Positions 20,415 to 32,187 of a DNA stretch of 32,187 nt are shown piece by piece. Origin of the DNA: Macrostomum hystrix (Eukaryota; Animalia; Platyhelminthes); contig CATNEN010000016.1 of the NCBI GenBank assembly GCA_950097015.1, forward strand, positions 1-32,187. The letters are read 5' to 3'. A program made the position numbers and the translations under genes. The notes under the pieces were generated by a model. It saw nothing but the letters and a program-made list of their open reading frames with translations, searched no databases and was not told where the DNA came from. Within the stretch, counting starts at the first letter, position 1. Every line of letters starts with the position of its first letter.

Positions 20415-20531
20415 ATCTACACACGGATTAATACCTTTAGAGAGCTCAAAAGTAATGATATACTTTAATTGCTTATTTAAATGTAAAAATCGGATTAACA
20501 AGGTTGAAATCAAACCCATTTGAAACGCCAG

Positions 20532-21396
20532 GCGACATCGGCAAACTACTACTACGGGCAGGGCCACCCGATGAAGCCGCACCGCATAAGAATGACACAC
20601 AACCTGCTGCTGAACTACGGCCTGTACCGCAAGATGAGATCTACCGGCCGCACAAGGCCACGGCCGAGGAGATGACGCGCTTCCACAGCGACGACTACAT
20701 CAAGTTCCTGCGCTCCATCCGGCTGACAACATGCACGAGTTCAACAAGCAGATGCAGCGCTTCAACGTTGGCGAGGACTGTCCCGTGTTCGACGGCCTGT
20801 ACGAGTTCTGCCAGCTCAGCACCGGCGGCTCCATCGCCGGGCCGTCAAGCTAAACAAGTGTGCCACCGACATCGCCATTAACTGGGGCGGCGGCCTCCAT
20901 CACGCCAAAAGTCCGAGGCCTCCGGCTTCTGCTACGTCAACGACATTGTGCTGGCCATTCTCGAGCTGCTCAAGTACCATCAGCGGGTGCTGTACGTTGA
21001 CATCGACATTCACCACGGCGACGGCGTCGAGGAAGCCTTCTACACCACCGACCGCGTCATGACCGTCTCGTTCCACAAGTACGGCGAGTACTTTCCCGGC
21101 ACCGGCGACCTCAAGGACATTGGCGCCGCCGCGGCAAGCACTACGCCGTCAACTTCCCGCTCAGGGACGGCATTGATGACGACGCCTTCGAGCAGATCTT
21201 CGCTCCCGTCATCACCAAGGTCATGGAGCACTACCGGCCCTCCGCCATCGTCCTGCAGTGCGGCGCCGACTCTCTGGCTGGCGACCGTCTCGGCTGCTTC
21301 AACCTATCGCTGAAGGGCCACGGCCGCTGCGTCCAGTTCATGAAGAAGTTTGACACCCCCCTGCTTCTGCTGGGTGGGCGGTGGCTACACGATCAG
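20532..21396 (+). CDS. HDAC1: Class I histone deacetylase, exon 2 (about seven 1-nt indels)
   Basis: CCAG|[76 protein letters not shown]|GT. Confidence 0.96.
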
Positions 21397-21430
21397 GTGG
21401 GTCCGGGCTGTGGGTGGCTTCTGCTGGCTA

Positions 21431-21640
21431 GAATGCAGCATCAGGCAGCTGGGCAGCATCAGGCAGCTGGGCAGCTGGGGATGGAGCATCAGGCAGCTGG
21501 GGATGCAGCATCAGGTAGTTGGGGATGCAGCATCAGGCAGTTGGGGATGCAGCATCAGGCAGCTGGGGATGCAGCATCAGGCAGCTGGGGATGCAGCATC
21601 AGGCAGCTGGGGATGCAGCATCAGGCAGCTGGGGATACAG
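21431..21640. repeat. 22-bp array (GCAGCATCAGGCAGCTGGGGAT)n filling HDAC intron 2
   Basis: Period 22 (21549, 21571, 21593). Confidence 0.93.
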
Positions 21641-21680
21641 CCTTATGCAGATGGGGATTCAACGAATCCCGCCTCCGCAG

Positions 21681-21910
21681 GAACGTGGCCCGCTGCTGGA
21701 CCTACGAGACGGCCATCGCTCTGGGCCAGGAGATCCCAAACGAGCTGCCCTACAATGACTACTTCGAGTACTTCGGACCGGACTTCAAGCTGCACATCCA
21801 GCCGTCGAACATGTCCAACCAGAACACCCCGGAGTACCTGGAGAAGATCAAGACTCGCCTGCTGGAGAACCTGCGAATGCTGCCCAACTCACCTGGAGTT
21901 CAGATGCAAG
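21681..21910 (+). CDS. HDAC1: Class I histone deacetylase, exon 3
   Basis: CCGCAG|[40 protein letters not shown]...PGVQMQ|GTGAG. Confidence 0.96.
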
Positions 21911-22084
21911 GTGAGCTCTGGCTTCTGTGCTCAAATCCCACCTGCTTTAGATCCCACCCACTGCACCATCCTAATCTGTGTCATACAAATACATACAACT
22001 CATAAAAATCCACACAGTCTCATACGAATCCCATAGAGTCTCACAGATCCCATATCAGAGAATTCTCAACTCCAACACCCGCAG

Positions 22085-22395
22085 ACATCCCGGAGGACGG
22101 CATGGTGGTGGACGCGGACGTGGCGCAGGAGGAGGCGGAGCAGGACCGCGGCAAGCGGGACGAGCAGCGGGTGAGCATTCGCTCGTCTGACAAGCGCGTC
22201 TCCGGCGACAACGAGCTCAGCGACAGCGAGGACGAGGCCGGCGACGGCCGGCGCGACGTCAGGTCGCACAAGCGGCAGAAGCGGGACAGCCGCGGCGAGT
22301 CGGCCGCCAAGCCCGAAGGCGTCGCCAAGAACGGCGACGGTGCCGGCAAGGCTGACTCAGCAACCAAGGGGGACAGCGAGGCGAAGACGGATTGA
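22085..22395 (+). CDS. HDAC1: Class I histone deacetylase, last exon (charged C-terminal tail)
   Basis: CCGCAG|AC IPED...RVSIRSSDKR...ELSDSEDE, ending in TGA. IPED and SDSEDE match the HDAC1/2 tail. Confidence 0.93.
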
Positions 22396-22875
22396 AGGAA
22401 TCGTCTGTGGACTCTTCTCTCGGCAGCTTTACTAATTTAATCCCGTGCACCCATTGAGGAGAAACCGCAGCTGAAGGATCCCAATTCTGATTCAGTTCAA
22501 GATCCAATCGCATAGAGATGTCACCCTGGCTCTTTTAAAATCAAACTATGCTACTCTTGATCTGTTTAGGCGCATATTCTCCGTAGTAGCCTACTCACTT
22601 GGTTTCTTCTAGTAAGTAGTATAATTGGCATATCGCATTGTTTTTTATTTGTTGTTAAATACGACTTTAATGAGTGTTTTTATTAAATATTCAGGGCTAG
22701 TTCGGTTAAAATCTAATTCGTTGTATTTTATGAGTTTATCGGAAGTCTAATTTATCTTTTCGTCTTGCATAGTGTTGTTGAAATCGTTACACACTTGCTA
22801 GCTTGTACTTTTATTCTCTCAGTTTCTAAAAAAATACATTTCTCTACTGCTTTTTTAATGCTTGCAGTCAAAACA

Positions 22876-23294: not shown

Positions 23295-24250
23295 TTGTTT
23301 AGAATTCGGGGTGTTAGTTAACAGATTTAGTAAATTCGGGACTTTAGTTAACAGATTTAGTAAATTCGGGACTTTAGTTAACAGATTTGGTAAATTCGGG
23401 ACTTTAGTTAACAGATTTGGTAAATTCGGGACTTTAGTTAACAGATTTGGTAAATTCGGGACTTTAGTTAACAGATTTAGTAAATTCGGGACTTTAGTTA
23501 ACAGATTGGTCAATTCGGGACTCCGGAAAACAGATTTTAGGAATATGGACTTTACTTAACAGATTTTGTAAATTCGGGACTTTAGTTAACAGATTTTGTA
23601 AATTCGGGACTTTAGTTAACAGATTTGGTAAATTCGGGACTTTAGTTAACAGATTTGGTAAATTCGGGACTTTAGTTAACAGATTTAGTAAATTCGGGAC
23701 TTTAGTTAACAGATTTGGTCAATTCGGGACTCCGGAAAACAGATTTTAGGAATATGGACTTTACTTAAACAGATTTTGTAAATTCGGGACTTTAGTTAAC
23801 AGATTTTGTAAATTCGGGACTTTAGTTAACAGATTTAGTAAATTCGGGACTTTAGTTAACAGATTTAGTAAATTCGGGACTTTAGTTAACAGATTTGGTA
23901 AATTCGGGACTCCGGAAAACAGATTTTAGGAATTCGGGACTTTGGAAAACAGATTTTAGGAATTCGGGACTCCGGAAACCGATTTAAGGGAGTCGGGACT
24001 CCGGAAACAGATTTTAGGGAGTCGGGACACCGGAAACAGATTTTAGGGAGTCGGGACTCCGGAAACAGATTTTAGGGAGTCGGGACACCGGAAACAGATT
24101 TTAGGGAGTTGGGACTCCGGAAACAGATTTTAGGGAGTTGGGACTCCGGAAACAGATTTTAGGGAGTCGGGACTCCGGAAACATATTTAAGCAATTCGGG
24201 ACTCTGTAAAATAGTTTCAGGAATTCAGGACTCTGGAAACAGATTTCAGG
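23295..24250. repeat. Intergenic tandem array: 30-bp unit (AAATTCGGGACTTTAGTTAACAGATTTAGT) grading into a 29-bp unit (CCGGAAACAGATTTTAGGGAGTCGGGACT)
   Basis: Period 30 at ~23340 and period 29 at 24001/24030. Confidence 0.95.
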
Positions 24251-25042: not shown

Positions 25043-25191
25043 ATGGCGTCGAATCCCAGCAGAACAAGTGGCGGCGGAAAATCACAGCCGAAGCCGAAGC
25101 AGCCAAAGCCACAACCTCAGCAGCAGCAGCAGCAGCAAGAGCAGGAGTTAGATCCTGAACAGGCGCGACTGCAACTGCTGGATGCGTACAG
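25043..25191 (+). CDS. Ankyrin-repeat TRPM-like channel, exon 1 (polyQ-containing N-terminus)
   Basis: MASNPSRT...QQQQQQQ...LLDAY AG|GTACTG; phase 2 matches the acceptor at 25467. The start codon is inferred. Confidence 0.7.
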
Positions 25192-25217
25192 GTACTGGAC
25201 ATTTCGGACAAGCGAGC

Positions 25218-25460
25218 AACTACAACTAACCTGCCGAACTATCAAACTACCCTACCAATCTCAACCAATGCCTACCTACCAACCTATTAACTACCAACTA
25301 CCAACCTACAATCGACCTACCAACCTACTAACCTACCTACAACCTACCAATTGAACTACCAACCTACCAATCGACCTACAAACCTACCAATCGACCTACC
25401 AACCTACTAACCCACCTACCAACCTACCAATTGAACTACCAACCTAATAATCGACCTACA
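25218..25460. repeat. (ACCTACCAA)-type low-complexity array in TRP intron 1
   Basis: Recurrent ACCTACCAAC / TCGACCTAC motifs. Confidence 0.85.
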
Positions 25461-25467
25461 CAACAAG

Positions 25468-25815
25468 GTCCGGCAAGCGGGACCTGCTGCGCCGGCTGTT
25501 GGCTCGCGCAGGTCTCTACGCCACAGTTGACGGCAACAAGACAATCGCCGATCTGGCAGCCGAAGAAGGCGACGGCGAGACACTCAAAGCGCTGAAAGTC
25601 CGCCGGCATGGATTTTGACAGACGAAACAACGACGGCCTGACGCCGTTTCACTACGCAATGCGCCGCGGCCGCGCCAACACGCTTGCGCTATTGCGCCGT
25701 CTCGGCGCCAGCGTCGACCTGCCGATGCCAGCCGTGCTGGGCGCTGGCATGGGCGACTACCCGCTGCATGCCGCCTGCGCCGGCGGTGACGCCCGTCTGC
25801 TCGATGTGCTGCTAG
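25468..25815 (+). CDS. Ankyrin-repeat TRPM-like channel, exon 2 (ankyrin repeats; one indel near 25597)
   Basis: GNKTIADLAAEEGD, NDGLTPFHYAMRRG, GDYPLHAACAGG; donor G|GTTTG. Confidence 0.88.
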
Positions 25816-25824
25816 GTTTGTCGT

Positions 25825-26413
25825 GGGATTTAGAATCCTAGGGATTTAGAATCCTAGGGATTTAGAATCCTAGGGATTTAGAATCCTAGGGATTTAGAAT
25901 CCTAGGGATTTAGAATCCTAGGGATTTAGAATCCTAGGGATTTAGAATCCTAGGGATTTAGAATCCTAGGGATTTAGAATCCTAGGGATTTAGAATCCTA
26001 GGGATTTAGAATCCTAGGGATTTAGAATCCTAGGGATTTAGAATCCTAGGGATTTAGAATCCTAGGGATTTAGAATCCTAGGGATTTAGAATCCTAGGGA
26101 TTTAGAATCCTAGGGATTAGAATCCTAGGGATTTAGAATCCTAGGGATTTAGAATCCTAGGGATTTAGAATCCTAGGGATTTAGAATCCTAGGGATTTAG
26201 AATCCTAGGGATTTAGAATCCTAGGGATTTAGAATCCTAGGGATTTAGAATCCTAGGGATTTAGAATCCTAGGATTTAGAAATCCTAGGGATTTAGAATC
26301 CTAGGGATTTATAATCCTAGGGATTTATAATCCTAGGGATTTAGAATCCTAGGGATTTAGATTCCTAGGGATTTAGAATCCTAGGGATTTAGAATCCTAG
26401 GGATTTAGAATCC
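25825..26413. repeat. 16-bp quasi-palindromic array (GGATTTAGAATCCTAG)n in TRP intron 2
   Basis: Period 16; near-perfect copies. Confidence 0.97.
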
Positions 26414-26442
26414 TTAACAGGTGGATTCGCTGTGTTCCGCAG

Positions 26443-27564
26443 ACCAATGTGGCGCGAATCCCGATGTGCTCGACGCCCAGGGGAACTCGCCCCTGCACCG
26501 CGCCTGCCTGGAGGACAACGCCGCCGCTGTTCGCGCCCTGCTTCCGCGCCTGCAGCCAGCCCTGCTGAACCTTCGAGGACACGACGGCCGCACCGCCCTG
26601 CACATCGCGGTGCTGAACCAGAGCCGCCTCATTGTCTACCTGCTGCTATCGCGCGGCGCTCTAGTCGATGTACCCGCAGAGAACGGTAAAACCGTCATCG
26701 ACCTGATCCTGCAGACCAGCAATCCGGTCCTGCTGAATGACTTCGCCAGGTTCTACACTGTTCGCATGACCGACGGCGCGCCAGTCTCGGACCTCGCCAG
26801 CCTCTGCAGCCAGCCGCAATTCCTTCGCTACCTGGAATTCCTGTCTAACGTTGACAACGAGTTCAGCCTCTGCAGCCTGGAGTACCGCCCGGTCGGATCC
26901 GCCGAGATGGCAGCGCTGCGAGCCAAGCTTCGCGACGATGACCGCATCGATGTGGTAGAATTCAAAGAGGTCATCCTGCGACTGCTGCAGACCGAGGAGA
27001 TCCACTCGCTGTGCCTGGACTATGATACCCTGGTCAAGGTGGTGGAGAACATCGTGCACTATGTACTGTTCAGGGAGGACGCGGATCTCCTGGAGAGAAT
27101 CATGCAGTGCGGCCCACTCTGGTCACGCATCGCTCCCCTGCTGCAGGAAAACCTCGACTCGCTCTATCTGCAGACTCCGGAGCGAGAGGTCAAACGGCAT
27201 CATCGCCCACTTTAGGGCTAATTTTGTGCGCGACGGCCGAGTGATGCACGACCGATTGGCCGGGTACTACGGCCGCAAGCTGGCCTGCTTTGGCCTGCCT
27301 GCCTGCCCGAGTCAGACCGGACCTGGCCAGCTGCCAGTTTGCGCCCTACATGCGCCACCCGATGCACAGCCTGACCGTCTGGTCGTCCTGTCTGGCCGGC
27401 TTCGCCTAATTCAACTGCTGCTGCGTCAGGAGCGATTCGATGTCGTGCCGCTGGCCCTGTTCTGCGCCGGACTGCTGCGCACGTTCCCGGACAATCAGGA
27501 GCTGGCCGTTGAGGCGGAGGAAATTGAACACCTGGCACTCACCTGCGAGAGGTTCGCTCGAAAG
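26443..27564 (+). CDS. Ankyrin-repeat TRPM-like channel, exon 3 (ankyrin repeats, then a helical MHR-like region; one indel near 27190)
   Basis: CCGCAG|AC gives an in-frame LLDVLL-D-QCGANPD. Contains QGNSPLHRAC, HDGRTALHIAV, NGKTVIDL and the MHR4-like PLALFCAGLLR...CERFARK|GTGAG. Confidence 0.88.
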
Positions 27565-27611
27565 GTGAGATCATGAAATTTGATTCGAGCGCCACTGCTT
27601 GCTTCTTCAAA

Positions 27612-28400
27612 TCCGAATCCTCAATCCTCACCCAGAATCCGAATCCTCAATCCTCACTAAGAATCCCTATCATCAATCCTCACCCAGAATCCAAATCCTC
27701 AATCCTCACCCAGAATCCAAATCCTCAATCCTCACCCAGAATCCGAATCCTCAATCCTTACCCAGAACCTGAATCCTCAATCCTCACCAAGAATCCGAAT
27801 CCTCAATCCTCACCCAGAATCCAAATCCTCAATCCTCACTAAGAATCCCTATCCTCAATCCTCACCCAGAATCCGAATCCTCAATCCTCACTAACAATCC
27901 CTATCCTCAATCCTCACCAAGAATCCAAATCCTCAATCCTCACTACAATCCCTATCATCAATCCTCACCCAGAATCCCTATCCTCAATCCTCACCCAGAA
28001 TCCAAATCCTCAATCCTCACCCAGAATCCGAATCCTCAATCCTCACCCAGAATCCCTATCCTCAATCCTCACCAAGAATCCCTATCCTCAATCCTCACCC
28101 AGAATCCAAATCCTCAATCCTCATCAAGAATCCCTATCCTCAATCCTCACCCAGAATCCGAATCCTCAATCCTTACTAAGAATCCCTAGCCTCAATCCTC
28201 ACCAAGAATCCGAATCCTCAATCCTCACCAGAATCCAAAACCTCAATCCTCAACCATAACCCAAACTAAATTATCACCCAGAATTTTAAATCCTCAATCC
28301 TTAACAAGAATCCAAATCTCAATCCTCACTCAGAATCCAAATCCCCAATCGTTACCAAGAATCCCAGTCCTCAATCCTCACTCAGAAACAATCCTTAATC
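27612..28400. repeat. 26-bp array (CCCAGAATCCRAATCCTCAATCCTCA)n in TRP intron 3
   Basis: Period 26 (27968, 27994). Confidence 0.95.
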
Positions 28401-28583
28401 CTCACTCAAAAATCTCAAACTCAATTTGCACTTTGGATGCCAAACCTCATTTCAAAATGACCTCAAATTGATTCCAAATCCTAAATCACTAAAATTCGAT
28501 TTCGGTACATCAGTTCCTCCCTAAAATCCTTACCCTCCTCCATTCGCGAATTCTGAAACATTCAAGTCCACTCAAAATCGCAG

Positions 28584-28933
28584 GTGACAGAGAAGGTGAA
28601 CTCAATCGACACCTCCTACGGCCGGTCGGTCAGCTCCGACTACCTGCTTCGGCCGCTGGAAGCCTACGGCGGCGTCACCTGCATCCGGCTGGCCGCTGGC
28701 AACGGCTGCGCCGACTTCCTGCAGAGCGAGGTCTGCCAGCGCGCCCTGGACAGGCAGTGGTACCGCAGCCTGCACCCGATGCCCCCCGGCCTGAGGGAGA
28801 TGCTCATCTGGATGGGCGCCGTTCCGTTCAACGTGTTCGCCCCGCTGCTGCTGCTGTACTTCGAAGAGACTGAGGCCTTGGCGCTAGGCGGCACGAGGAG
28901 CGATCCTTTGTGGGATCTGACAATGGGACTCAG
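28584..28933 (+). CDS. Ankyrin-repeat TRPM-like channel, exon 4 (MHR4 / pre-S1; 3' end phase uncertain)
   Basis: LLRPLEAYGGVTCIRLAA...FLQSEVCQRALDRQWYRSL resembles the TRPM LL-R-x-WG-x-TCL-x-LA...Q-x-LL-x-W motif. Confidence 0.85.
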
Positions 28934-28965
28934 GTGATAAGAGAATGGGATTCAAGCTCTGAAAT

Positions 28966-29215
28966 CTAGGGATTTCGATTCCGAATATTAGGGATTTCTA
29001 ATCAGAATCCGGGGGATTTCTAATCAGAATCCGAGGGATTTCTATTCAGAATCCGAGGGATTTCTAATCAGAATCCGAGGGATTTCTATTCATAATCCAA
29101 GGGATTTCTATTCAGAATCCAAGGGATTTCTATTCAGAATCCAAGGATTTCTATTCAGAATCCAAGGGATTTCTATTCAGAATCCAAGGGATTTCTAATT
29201 AGAATCCAAGGAATT
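28966..29215. repeat. 22-bp array (GGGATTTCTATTCAGAATCCAA)n in TRP intron 4
   Basis: Direct periodicity, with an internal GGATT...AATCC inverted repeat. Confidence 0.93.
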
Positions 29216-29247
29216 ATGATTCAGTACTAATTTTCAACATCCAACAG

Positions 29248-29933
29248 ACAGTCACCAAGTTTCGTCTGACGCTGCCAATCGTTGCCAAAAGATCTGACAC
29301 AGTTGATAGAAAATCACTCGACTTTGATTCGTCGATGGAGGCTGCCGAAAATATGCGCCGAGCAAAATCAATCGATAATCAGCAGCAGCAGCGGCAAGAA
29401 CAGCCAGAGTCTGTGCAGCTGCTTGCAGTTGAGGCCAGGGCCAATCCCATCTCGACCCCTAACACGGACAGCGAGCCGCAGTCTCTGATTCGCCCGCTGT
29501 CTGAGCCCGGCGGTCGCAGCGGATTGGTCCGGCGGTTCGGTCGGTTTTTCCAGCTAATTGACGAATTTTATTCTGTGCCGGCTGTGAAATTTCATTATCA
29601 CGTGGCTTCTCACCTGCTGTTGGTCCTACTGCTGTCTTACCTGTTGCTGGTTGACTTCAAGTACGCATTGAGCTTCAAAGAGGGCCTAGCCTACGCCATC
29701 CTGTTCGGTTTCCTGCTCGAGGAGGCTGTCCAGGTGATGCAGAGCGTCCACGTTCGCGACTTTCGCAGCTACTTTCGCACCAAATGGAATCTGATTGACT
29801 TGGCCGGACTGGCTTCCGGCAGTGTGGGCTTCGGACTGAGAGCTGTGCGCCTGGGAGCCGCCGAGACCGACTGGTCCGAGCCGGCCAGGGACTTTGATGA
29901 CAACCTGTGGTATTTATCCAGGGTCATGCTCCA
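29248..29933 (+). CDS. Ankyrin-repeat TRPM-like channel, exon 5 (S1-S3 and start of S4)
   Basis: FYSVPAVKF, S2 LLEEAVQ, S3 KWNLIDL, LSRVML|GTGAG. Confidence 0.9.
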
Positions 29934-29965
29934 GTGAGTGCTTCGGCTGCTCTGAGTGCTTGGGA

Positions 29966-30560
29966 AAGGACTAGGGAAACCAAGGACTAGGGAAACCATG
30001 GACAAGGGAAACCATGGGACAAGGGAAACCAAGGACTAGGGAAACCCAGGACTAGGGAAACCATGGACTATCAAATCCAAGGACTAAGAAACCATGGACT
30101 GTCTAATCCAGGACTAAGAAACCATGGACTGTCTAATCCAAGGACTAATAAACCCAAGGACAATCAAATCCAAGGACTAAGGAAACCAAGGACTATCAAA
30201 TCCAATGACTATCGAATCCAAGGACTAAGGAAACCAAGGACTATCGAATCCAAGGACTAAGGAAACCAAGGACTATCAAATCCAATGACTATCGAATCCA
30301 AGGACTAAGGAAACCAAGGACTATCGAATCCAAGGACTAAGGAAACCAAGGACTATCAAATCCAAGGACTATCGAATCCAAGGACTAAGGAGCCCGAGGA
30401 CTATCGAATCCAAGGACTAAGGAAACCAAGGACTATCAAATCCAAGGACTATCGAATCCAAGGACTAAGGAGCCCGAGGACTATCGAATCCAAGGACTAA
30501 GGAAACCAAGGACTATCAAATCCAAGGACTATCGAATCCAAGGACTAGGGAAACCAAGTA
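29966..30560. repeat. 16-bp subunit array (CCAAGGACTATCGAAT / CCAAGGACTAAGGAAA) with 80-bp higher-order repeats, TRP intron 5
   Basis: Diagnostic variants recur at 30201/30281 and 30391/30471. Confidence 0.93.
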
Positions 30561-30872
30561 ATTGGGAATCCAAATAGTAAGGGTCATTTGGGACGCACAA
30601 AGCCGCACTCCATACCCCTGCACCACCCAGCCACCCACTCGCCAATCACAGCGCAGCAGGGGGATGGCTGCCCGGATTGGCAGCCAATCAGCGTGCAGTA
30701 AACAAGCGATTTAACAACGGGGGTTAAGTGACGCCAAGCAGAAAATGAGGCTACGCAATACACATGAAATGAATTACATGAAAGAATAGAATTACAAATT
30801 ATAAGTGAGATAACTTTCAAGAAAGTTGCATCCAGATTGAATGGCAGTTGTACTCTACCATAATCTGCGCAG

Positions 30873-31236
30873 GCATCTGTTGCATGCTGTACTGGATTCG
30901 ACTGCTGTACGTGTCTACAGTGCTAGAGAATCTGGGACCGAAGCTCAAAATGATTGCCACCATGATCACCAAGGACTGCTACCATTCCTGCTAATTCTGT
31001 TCATCTTCATCTTTGCTTCGGCGTGCTCATCCACAGCCTGCTCTATCCCAACGGCTACAAGGCGTGGAATCCCAATAAGCTGAGCAAGGTGCAAGTGCTT
31101 CTCAAAATGCTCAAAGTCTGTTTCTACAGCATGGTCGGCGAGTACAGTCTGGACATTCTGATGGGCGACGAGGTCTGCGAGCAGCTGTACGCCAACGGCA
31201 CGGCGAATGATGAGAGCTGTCCGCATCCGTTTGCAG
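30873..31236 (+). CDS. Ankyrin-repeat TRPM-like channel, exon 6 (S4, S4-S5 linker, S5, pore; two indels)
   Basis: ICCMLYWIRLLY, LGPKLKMIATMITKD, FGVLIHSLLYP, pore FYSMVGEYSLD, and an extracellular Cys pair (VC...ESCP). Confidence 0.92.
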
Positions 31237-31266
31237 GTGCGGCGGGCTCGGGGAAGCTGGCTTCGT

Positions 31267-31702
31267 TTGAGGATTGGATTCCATTAGGTAGAGGTTTGGA
31301 TTCCATTAGTAGAGGTTTGGATTCCATTAGGTAGAGGTTTGGATTCCATTAGGTTGAGGATTGTATTCCATTAGGTTGAGGATTGGATTCCATTAGGTTG
31401 AGGATTGGATTCCATTAGGTTGAGGATTGGATTCCATTAGGTTGAGGATTGGATTCCATTAGGTTGAGGATTGGATTCCATTAGGTTGAGGATTGGATTC
31501 CATTAGGTAGAGGTTTGGATTCCATTAGGTTGAGGATTGGATTCCATTAGGTTGAGGATTGGATTCCATTAGGTTGAGGAATTGGATTCCATTAGGTTGG
31601 GGATTGGATTCCATTAGGTTGAGGATTGGATTCCATTAGGTTGAGGATTGGATTCCATTAGGTTGGGGATTGGATTCCATAGGTTGAGGATTGGATTCCA
31701 TT
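31267..31702. repeat. 22-bp array (GAGGATTGGATTCCATTAGGTT)n in TRP intron 6
   Basis: Direct periodicity. Confidence 0.96.
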
Positions 31703-31827
31703 CGACCGAGTGTTGGGTTCCGCAGGTTTGAAGGATTGGGTTTCACAGGGTCAAGAAATAGAATTTAGTCGCTATGGCTATCCAGCCGTATGTGCTTTAT
31801 CTACTAAAGAGTTTGGACTCACCGCAG

Positions 31828-32187
31828 ATATCTGGTGCCTTATGTGGTCCTACCGCTGTACGTGATTGTGACCGAGATCCTGCTGCTGAATCTCATCATC
31901 GCCATATTCAGCAAGACGGTGGAGACCATCGACTCGCGCAGCAAGGGCCTCTGGCAGTTCGAGCGGCACGACCTCATCGAGGAATTCGAGGGCCGCTCCG
32001 GCCTGCCGCCACCTCTGAAACGCTCTGGATTTGGCGCGCCGGCTGCTCGTACGGCTGGCCAAGCGGCTGTGCTCCAGGGCTGACCGCCCCGGCACCTTCA
32101 GCCGCTTCAGCCAGAAATTGGTGCTGCAGTTCCTGCTGTTTCAGGTGACACGGCCTGACTGCATGTCACCAACTGAACACTCAGATT
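31828..32187 (+). CDS. Ankyrin-repeat TRPM-like channel, exon 7 (S6, TRP box; gene runs off the window end, possible donor at ~32145)
   Basis: LYVIVTEILLLNLIIAIFSKT, TRP box WQFER, then LIEEFEGRSGLPPPL. Confidence 0.92.

Follow-up and report, generated by a model that had tools for sequence, protein, structure and literature searches.

The window analysed here, a 32,187-nucleotide stretch of Macrostomum hystrix DNA (contig CATNEN010000016.1, forward strand), ends in a gene whose product is very probably one subunit of a tetrameric, Ca2+-permeable and non-selective cation channel of the flatworm TRPM_MCLZ type, and the gene itself is most likely intact. It starts at position 25043 and continues past the window end, which falls at about residue 1220 of ~1360. 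The predicted subunit would run from a low-complexity stretch through about six ankyrin repeats, the melastatin homology regions MHR3 and MHR4, a pre-S1 helix, an S1-S4 voltage-sensor-like domain and an S5-pore-S6 region (with VGEY and a Cys pair) to a TRP helix. It is a new free-living relative of TRPM_MCLZ and not a new kind of channel; the layout has been in print since 2023-2024. TRPM_MCLZ is the schistosome target of the drug meclonazepam and a non-selective channel (PMC10788528). Here, we describe the domain content of the M. hystrix gene, its colinearity with the paralogues of Macrostomum lignano and its membership in the ankyrin-bearing clade; a single complementary DNA (cDNA) encoding the whole layout (PMC10788528), and opening by a ligand bound in the S1-S4/TRP cavity, have been shown for the schistosome relative only.

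The window was searched exon by exon, and full-length comparisons were made with its closest protein in the databases, M. lignano PAA64798.1 (1358 amino acids, aa; hereafter P0014). The features of the locus are the following.

25043-25191, forward strand: exon 1, with the ATG and a low-complexity N-terminus that ends in LLDAYR, donor AG/GT (called from the open reading frame and the sequence).
25468-25815, forward strand: exon 2, ankyrin repeats 1-3 (Pfam Ank families, E 5e-9), with a frame break at ~25596 (CTGAAAGTCC).
26443-27564, forward strand: exon 3, ankyrin repeats 4-6 (to ~26775; Ank_2, E 3.5e-11), then the MHR3-like helical domain, where the PF25508 (TRPM2-like) region begins.
~27192, forward strand: frame break of one base in exon 3, at GTCAAACGG, across which P0014 residues 244-495 and 496-616 are contiguous.
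28584-28933, forward strand: exon 4, MHR4 (EAYGGVTCIRLA..., CQRALDRQW) and the pre-S1 region, donor CAG/GTGATA, with a frame break at ~28875-28885.
29260-29933, forward strand: exon 5, a low-complexity linker, the pre-S1 helix and S1-S3, with the S1 His pair.
30848-31236, forward strand: exon 6, S4, the S4-S5 linker with LGPK, S5, the pore helix, the VGEY filter and the Cys pair, with frame breaks at ~30975 and ~31015.
31828-32144, forward strand: exon 7, S6, the TRP helix (LWQFERHDLIEEF...LPPPL) and a post-TRP helix, donor CAG/GTGACA, with a frame break at ~32019 (CTGAAACGC).
25274-25464, 25825-26414, 27610-28405, 28968-29215, 29966-30558 and 31267-31702: intron minisatellites.

The ankyrin repeats were recognised directly in the window. 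Pfam Ank, Ank_2, Ank_3 and Ank_4 match positions 25596-25838 (E 5e-9), and Ank_2 matches the first 85 residues of the reading frame at 26418-27212 (E 3.5e-11). By eye and from an AlphaFold2 (AF2) model of the homologue, about six repeats lie within ~25468-26775, in line with the 5-6 that a first-pass annotation of this DNA had read in exons 2-3. The TRPM motifs that it listed are all present as well: the YGG motif EAYGGVTCIRLA in exon 4, the S4-S5 linker ENLGPKLKM, SMVGEYSLD together with C...SCPHPF in the pore, and LWQFERHDLIEEFEGRSGLPPPL in the TRP helix, with its TRP box and LPPPL. In sequence searches of the PDB, exon 5 (S1-S4) returned TRPM chains only, the best being zebrafish TRPM2 (2.4e-7). 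With exon 7 (S6-TRP), TRPM chains led the matches (human TRPM2, 2.9e-14) and TRPV3 was far weaker, and exon 4 (MHR4) gave weak matches to the expected region of nvTRPM2 (660-709) and TRPM8 (640-687). The frame-1 piece of exon 3 and the pore exon gave chance-level matches only. Pfam searches with single exon pieces of the window found Ank and weak Ion_trans/PKD_channel matches, with neither PF25508 nor a TRPM family. TRPC or NOMPC chains were absent among the best PDB matches, both for the window exons and for the profile built from the post-ankyrin region, and a TRPC-like identity was rejected by the PDB and profile searches.

An exhaustive search with exon 5 in a library of 1.84 billion proteins gave 46 matches, with P0014 as the best (3.5e-43). 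P0014 is colinear with the window gene across residues 142-1220, each exon showing 56-89% identity, and the domain order of P0014 and its cluster mates PAA83050.1 and PAA90177.1, all annotated as 'hypothetical protein', is identical to that of the window gene. P0014 differs in coming from another species, in its longer low-complexity N-terminus (~120 aa versus 44 aa in the window gene) and in having no frame breaks. Among the full-length relatives scanned with Pfam, nine have Ank and Ion_trans without LSDAT (eight M. lignano clusters and one read-assembly protein), and those eight clusters also match PF25508 partially, from ~63-136 to ~231-255 of the profile. The M. lignano cluster P0022 has Ank and PF25508 with no Ion_trans match. 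LSDAT was absent in 10 of the 10 close relatives scanned with Pfam, and the SLOG-bearing TRPMs among the same matches carry LSDAT_euk, the full PF25508 and Ion_trans.

The layout extends beyond Macrostomum. The read-assembly relative is a 1413-aa protein encoded on a 4.6-kb intron-free contig and clusters with the Schistocephalus entry A0A0V0J4K6, and a search from an Opisthorchis member found trematode and cestode proteins with the ankyrin-TRPM layout. Three models from read assemblies and MetaClust, P0042 and P0058 with ankyrin repeats and P0028 without its N-terminus, are probably from other free-living flatworms. The tardigrade protein P0115, also among the matches of the Opisthorchis search, was identified as a NOMPC orthologue by PDB search. 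A word search with exon 3, restricted by its length filter, found generic ankyrin proteins only, and one with the transmembrane (TM) region of P0014 gave seven matches, insufficient for a tree. We also noticed that the Opisthorchis viverrini protein P0020 (1906 aa) contains two channel cores one after the other, the first with S1-S4 at 673-772 and TRP at 921-982, the second with S1-S4 at 1363-1477 and TRP at 1605-1666; this double core fits the duplicated alternative terminal exon 3a/3b of Opisthorchis (PMC12861061).

On the alignments and models, the ankyrin repeats occupy the exact place of MHR1/2 while MHR3 and MHR4 are retained, because hhalign, the PDB profile and the structural alignment all match MHR3 and MHR4 only. 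When the Macrostomum post-ankyrin region was aligned by hhalign with the N-termini of SLOG TRPMs, P0014 residues 519-686 matched the end of MHR3 and MHR4 (98.2%), and SLOG was left unmatched. The post-ankyrin profile retrieved TRPM chains only from the PDB (nvTRPM2 563-756, E 2.9e-14). The AF2 model of P0014 residues 140-860 (predicted local distance difference test score, pLDDT, 74) has six ankyrin repeats and, after them, a domain made entirely of helices. Foldseek with this 721-aa model returned mostly ankyrin proteins; with the post-ankyrin part modelled alone (pLDDT 82), the matches were TRPM channels only. VIA-align gave Z 14-17 to TRPM2/3/4/5/7 over 240-310 aligned residues, with model residues 37-361 set against TRPM ~390-760 (MHR3 and MHR4); such a Z can arise for helical repeats, and here the top 50 rows were all TRPM and the whole domain was covered. 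The clade members thus lack the MHR1/2 (LSDAT_euk) of a canonical TRPM and, as seen through P0014, have its MHR3 and MHR4.

The spacer that separates the YGG motif from the last ankyrin repeat measures ~290-300 aa. The first-pass annotation had put the distance between the ankyrin repeats and MHR4 at ~240 aa, which is an underestimate, but its point stands, as the spacer leaves far too little room for SLOG and MHR3 together. In addition, a single exon (26443-27564) encodes both ankyrin repeats 4-6 and ~260 aa of MHR3-type sequence; therefore, the two parts do not belong to two genes. Its central proposal, a TRPM-type core without SLOG and with ankyrin repeats in that place, is borne out by the Pfam, hhalign, PDB profile and structural results.

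This architecture has been described in parasitic flatworms. Schistosome TRPM_MCLZ (Smp_333650, 1380 aa) has no NH2-terminal MHR1/2 or SLOG and has ankyrin-like modules instead (PMC11731825, 2024), and the group, with 63 orthologues in parasitic flatworms and members among trematodes, monogeneans and cestodes, has been named 'TRPM-like' for its N-terminal ankyrin repeats (PMC12861061, 2026). The TRPM_MCLZ cDNA was cloned and gave a meclonazepam-evoked current with a linear current-voltage relation and reversal near 0 mV (PMC10788528). Its H831 and R943 are reported to be invariant in the 63 orthologues, and the His pair to be missing from other schistosome TRPMs (PMC12861061). Among our sequences, the Schistosoma protein P0102 (1380 aa) has H827, H831, Y864, E868, R943 and Y1117 at the exact positions given in PMC12861061, and its 90% cluster includes S. 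bovis CAH8481013.1, which was synthesised as Sb.TRPM_MCLZ in PMC10788528.

The phylogeny of the core places the window gene beside this published family. Trees were inferred with IQ-TREE under LG+C20+F+G4 by PMSF from the S1-TRP core only, with the N-terminal columns excluded; the sample excluded fragments, two chimeric models and cluster mates that were nearly identical, and the window gene was represented by exon 5 alone. In the 49-row tree, the SLOG TRPMs are separated from the rest (95/94). The Macrostomum ankyrin clade is supported at 100/99, and within it the window exon 5 and P0014 are sisters (99/97). The parasite TRPM_MCLZ orthologues form a group (93/99) that, together with P0028, P0042 and P0058, is the sister of the Macrostomum clade (90/88); in branching order, these three proteins fall between Macrostomum and the parasite orthologues. 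A second tree of 40 rows was computed without the very long branches P0116 (a metagenome protein) and P0036 and rooted on the TRPN P0115. In this tree, the ankyrin group is monophyletic (96/90) and the SLOG TRPMs are separate (95/88). Across the two trees, support for the Macrostomum clade with the window exon reaches 100/100. One sequence sets the root, its branch is very long, at 5.4 changes per column, and the sample is without TRPS and typed TRPM alpha, beta-like and gamma sequences.

As the tree puts the Macrostomum clade sister to the orthologue clade, the window gene belongs to a Macrostomum expansion co-orthologous with TRPM_MCLZ. P0115, the one TRPN in the data set, falls outside the ankyrin group on a long branch and the top PDB matches are TRPM; on these results the core is not closest to TRPC or TRPN, in agreement with the first-pass reading. 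That annotation had also suggested an unrecognised clade, and this suggestion did not hold: the architecture is published as TRPM_MCLZ (PMC10788528, PMC11731825, PMC12861061), and the TM-region tree puts the window gene in this already described ankyrin-bearing clade.

The reading frame of the window gene is broken at several sites. At least six one-base frame shifts lie inside exons (~25596, 27192, 28880, 30975, 31015 and 32019), and further breaks are probable at the exon 5 donor (29934) and the exon 6/7 junction (31236/31828). No in-frame stop was found in the ~3.3 kb of coding sequence. In tblastn, P0014 crosses each break with contiguous residue numbers; therefore, the breaks are indels and not introns. 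In exon 2, frame 2 covers P0014 residues 142-170 and frame 3 continues without a gap through 170-243, and in exon 3 residues 244-495 and 496-616 align at 64% and 57% identity. Exon 4 matches residues 615-712 at 67% identity and 717-737 in another frame. Exon 6 matches 975-1016 (79% identity) and 1029-1102 (68%) in different frames, with the 12 residues between them in a third, and in exon 7 residues 1104-1168 (88% identity) and 1168-1220 fall in different frames.

A control is provided by the HDAC1 gene (20508-22400), 3 kb upstream, which has at least six one-base frame changes in ~1 kb and zero stops. There the frame changes without an intron, as Hist_deacetyl profile positions 115-195 (Pfam) are read in frame 2 and 191-274 in frame 1; in a PDB search, frame 1 matches HDAC1 residues 81-120 and frame 3 matches residues 120-145. 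The indel rate in the window is ~1 per 150-500 coding bases. Since the highly conserved HDAC1 is broken alike with its residues intact, the one-base breaks of the channel gene are, as judged from the sequence, most likely assembly errors in an intact gene. Tiny introns or programmed shifts at the breaks were rejected, as the HDAC1 control favours assembly error. The breaks with an excess base (25596, 27192 and 32019) all occur at G/C-AAA-G/C (CTGAAAGTC, GTCAAACGG and CTGAAACGC), and those with a deficit fall where a run of two or three bases may have been shortened (GACTGC, GCTTCG, CAGTGAG). This context pattern looks like systematic homopolymer miscalling.

The same indels affect the splice junctions. 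The first-pass annotation had described splicing in matching phase, which agrees with the first three junctions (25191/25468, 25815/26443 and 27564/28584) and not with the exon 5 donor or the exon 6 and exon 7 phases; the frame breaks had been overlooked. Exon 1 ends in phase 2, which matches the exon 2 acceptor at 25468. LLDAYR and exon 2 are colinear with 'VLDAYKANRLEQLKRLL' of P0014, whose LDAYK backs this junction. The exact exon 5 acceptor is uncertain, with 29260 in accord with phase 0 and 29292 or 29310 as other candidates. Its donor reads CAG/TGAGTG, from which one G is probably missing, and exon 6 may start at 30836 instead of 30848. All introns are long and mostly filled with a tandem minisatellite, with a different unit in each (16-26 bases, 10-37 copies, 77-98% matches). 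Repeats were also observed outside the channel gene: a 29-base tandem repeat (8.7 copies, 90% matches) lies at 24000-24250, ~800 bases before the start codon, and HDAC1 has a repeat-filled intron at ~21400-21650.

The TRPM Ca2+ site is complete in the window gene (5/5), with E and Q in S2, N and D in S3 (exon 5) and E in the TRP helix; these are the five residues that bind Ca2+ in the TRPM2/4/5/8 structures. With all five kept, cytosolic Ca2+ would probably be needed or sensed by the channel. At the columns of H827, H831 and R943, the window gene has H, H and R, and flatworm SLOG TRPMs have N/S/H plus Y. Because the S1 His pair and the S4 Arg known from TRPM_MCLZ are kept, the channel would most likely open through the S1-S4/TRP cavity, by analogy with the ligand-opened schistosome relative. 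Control by adenosine diphosphate (ADP)-ribose or nucleotides appears unlikely, since SLOG is absent and the homologues are without NUDT9H; in P0014, Pfam found no NUDT9H or other enzyme domain at the C-terminus. As one of many Macrostomum paralogues, the channel probably has a sensory or other specialised role.

Several observations weigh against an intact gene of the TRPM_MCLZ type. PF25508 was undetected on the window exon pieces, and the MHR3/4 call comes via P0014 and the profiles of its relatives. The exon 4/5, 5/6 and 6/7 junctions are not fixable to a single base because of the indels, and the presumed intactness and splice junctions are supported through homology together with the HDAC1 control. 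The window gene is also no one-to-one TRPM_MCLZ orthologue, in that it belongs to a Macrostomum-specific expansion and the sister node is supported at only 90/88 to 96/90. At the ligand pocket, it has Phe at the positions of Y864 and Y1117 and Tyr at that of H946. Low-sensitivity orthologues carry Tyr at S4 position 946, where His is needed for meclonazepam potency (PMC10788528); given this Tyr, the channel of the window gene is predicted to be insensitive to meclonazepam.

The frame breaks could instead be real mutations, six to eight in number, in a decaying pseudogene, and no full-length channel would then come from this copy. Six frame breaks together with two junction phase conflicts would fit such decay, and a dead copy is plausible given the many Macrostomum paralogues. 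However, zero in-frame stops in ~3.3 kb and 56-89% identity to P0014 in every exon speak against decay, and the conserved HDAC1 3 kb upstream is likewise broken, at least six times in ~1 kb and without stops. We therefore regard a pseudogene as quite improbable. It is harder still to credit that two neighbouring genes, for an ankyrin-repeat protein and an N-terminally short TRPM, were wrongly merged. The locus is known here from genomic sequence alone, and its long repeat-filled introns could conceal gene boundaries, but ankyrin repeats 4-6 share exon 26443-27564 with ~260 aa of MHR3-type sequence, and the PF25508-type domain of the homologue bridges the next intron. Moreover, the same layout occurs in independent gene models of at least 10 M. 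lignano clusters, in the 4.6-kb intron-free contig (1413 aa) and in the cloned S. mansoni cDNA (PMC10788528).

A further possibility concerns the age of the whole group. The ankyrin-bearing flatworm channels may be an old lineage outside TRPM, either the flatworm TRPS or a further TRPM-type branch, which split off before the sampled SLOG TRPMs diverged. With the root on the TRPN P0115, the sister of the ankyrin group (96/90) is the whole sampled set of SLOG TRPMs (95/88), and the group does not fall inside the flatworm SLOG TRPMs. Both large TRPM/TRPS phylogenies were made without this phylum, as one covers 14 phyla without Platyhelminthes (PMC7306681) and the other makes no mention of flatworms (PMC13143021). 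On the other hand, the rooting depends on one outgroup with a very long branch (5.4 changes per column), fast-evolving clades are pulled rootward, and the tree sample is without TRPS, alpha, beta-like and gamma references. In addition, TRPS is defined with SLOG and NUDT9H and has no ankyrin repeats (PMC7306681). We thus consider an early split unlikely. If it were true, the published rule that every TRPM/TRPS member has the full melastatin region would fail, and the ankyrin repeats would have been kept from a pre-TRPM ancestor or MHR1/2 would have been swapped out early. The free-living Macrostomum would then have expanded the branch to at least 10 paralogues with diverse ligand pockets.

Taking the window gene as a free-living relative of TRPM_MCLZ, its value is modest and comparative, since the ankyrin-for-SLOG layout is known and has a cloned, drug-gated representative. 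The TRPM_MCLZ literature surveys parasitic flatworms only, and the family is now seen, greatly expanded, in a free-living and basally branching genus whose members keep a recognisably TRPM-like MHR3/4. This helps to place the domain change before the origin of the parasitic flatworms and gives structure-function studies of the drug pocket a set of channels from outside the parasites. The large phylogenies, made without Platyhelminthes, leave a gap as to where the clade stands relative to TRPS and the four types of TRPM.

Compared with TRPM_MCLZ, the window gene and its homologues share the N-terminal ankyrin repeats, the lack of SLOG and MHR1-2, the TRPM-type MHR4, S1-S6, the TRP helix and a length of ~1360-1380 aa, as well as the S1 His pair, the S4 Arg and the clade in the core tree. 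They differ in several respects. The window gene belongs to a Macrostomum expansion of at least 10 paralogue clusters, whereas the parasite TRPM_MCLZ set has one gene per species. It has at least seven exons versus three in S. mansoni TRPM_MCLZ, its TRP box reads WQFER versus W-L-A-G-R-Y in the parasites, and MHR3/4 is recognisable by Pfam PF25508 in the Macrostomum members but not in the parasite proteins.

With the canonical TRPMs (TRPM2/4/5/8 and others), the window gene shares the MHR3 and MHR4 fold, the S1-S4 Ca2+-site residues, the LGPK linker, the pore helix with its Cys pair and the TRP helix followed by PPP. In contrast to them, the clade is without the MHR1/2 SLOG region and has true ankyrin repeats, and the homologues have no NUDT9H or kinase domain. 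In TRPC and TRPN, too, ankyrin repeats are followed by a linker domain of helices, the TRP box and a proline-rich box, but the core of the window gene is closest to TRPM and not to TRPC or NOMPC. TRPS (soromelastatin), which is defined by SLOG and NUDT9H and is without ankyrin repeats (PMC7306681), differs from the window gene in architecture, as ankyrin repeats are present and SLOG is absent in the latter.

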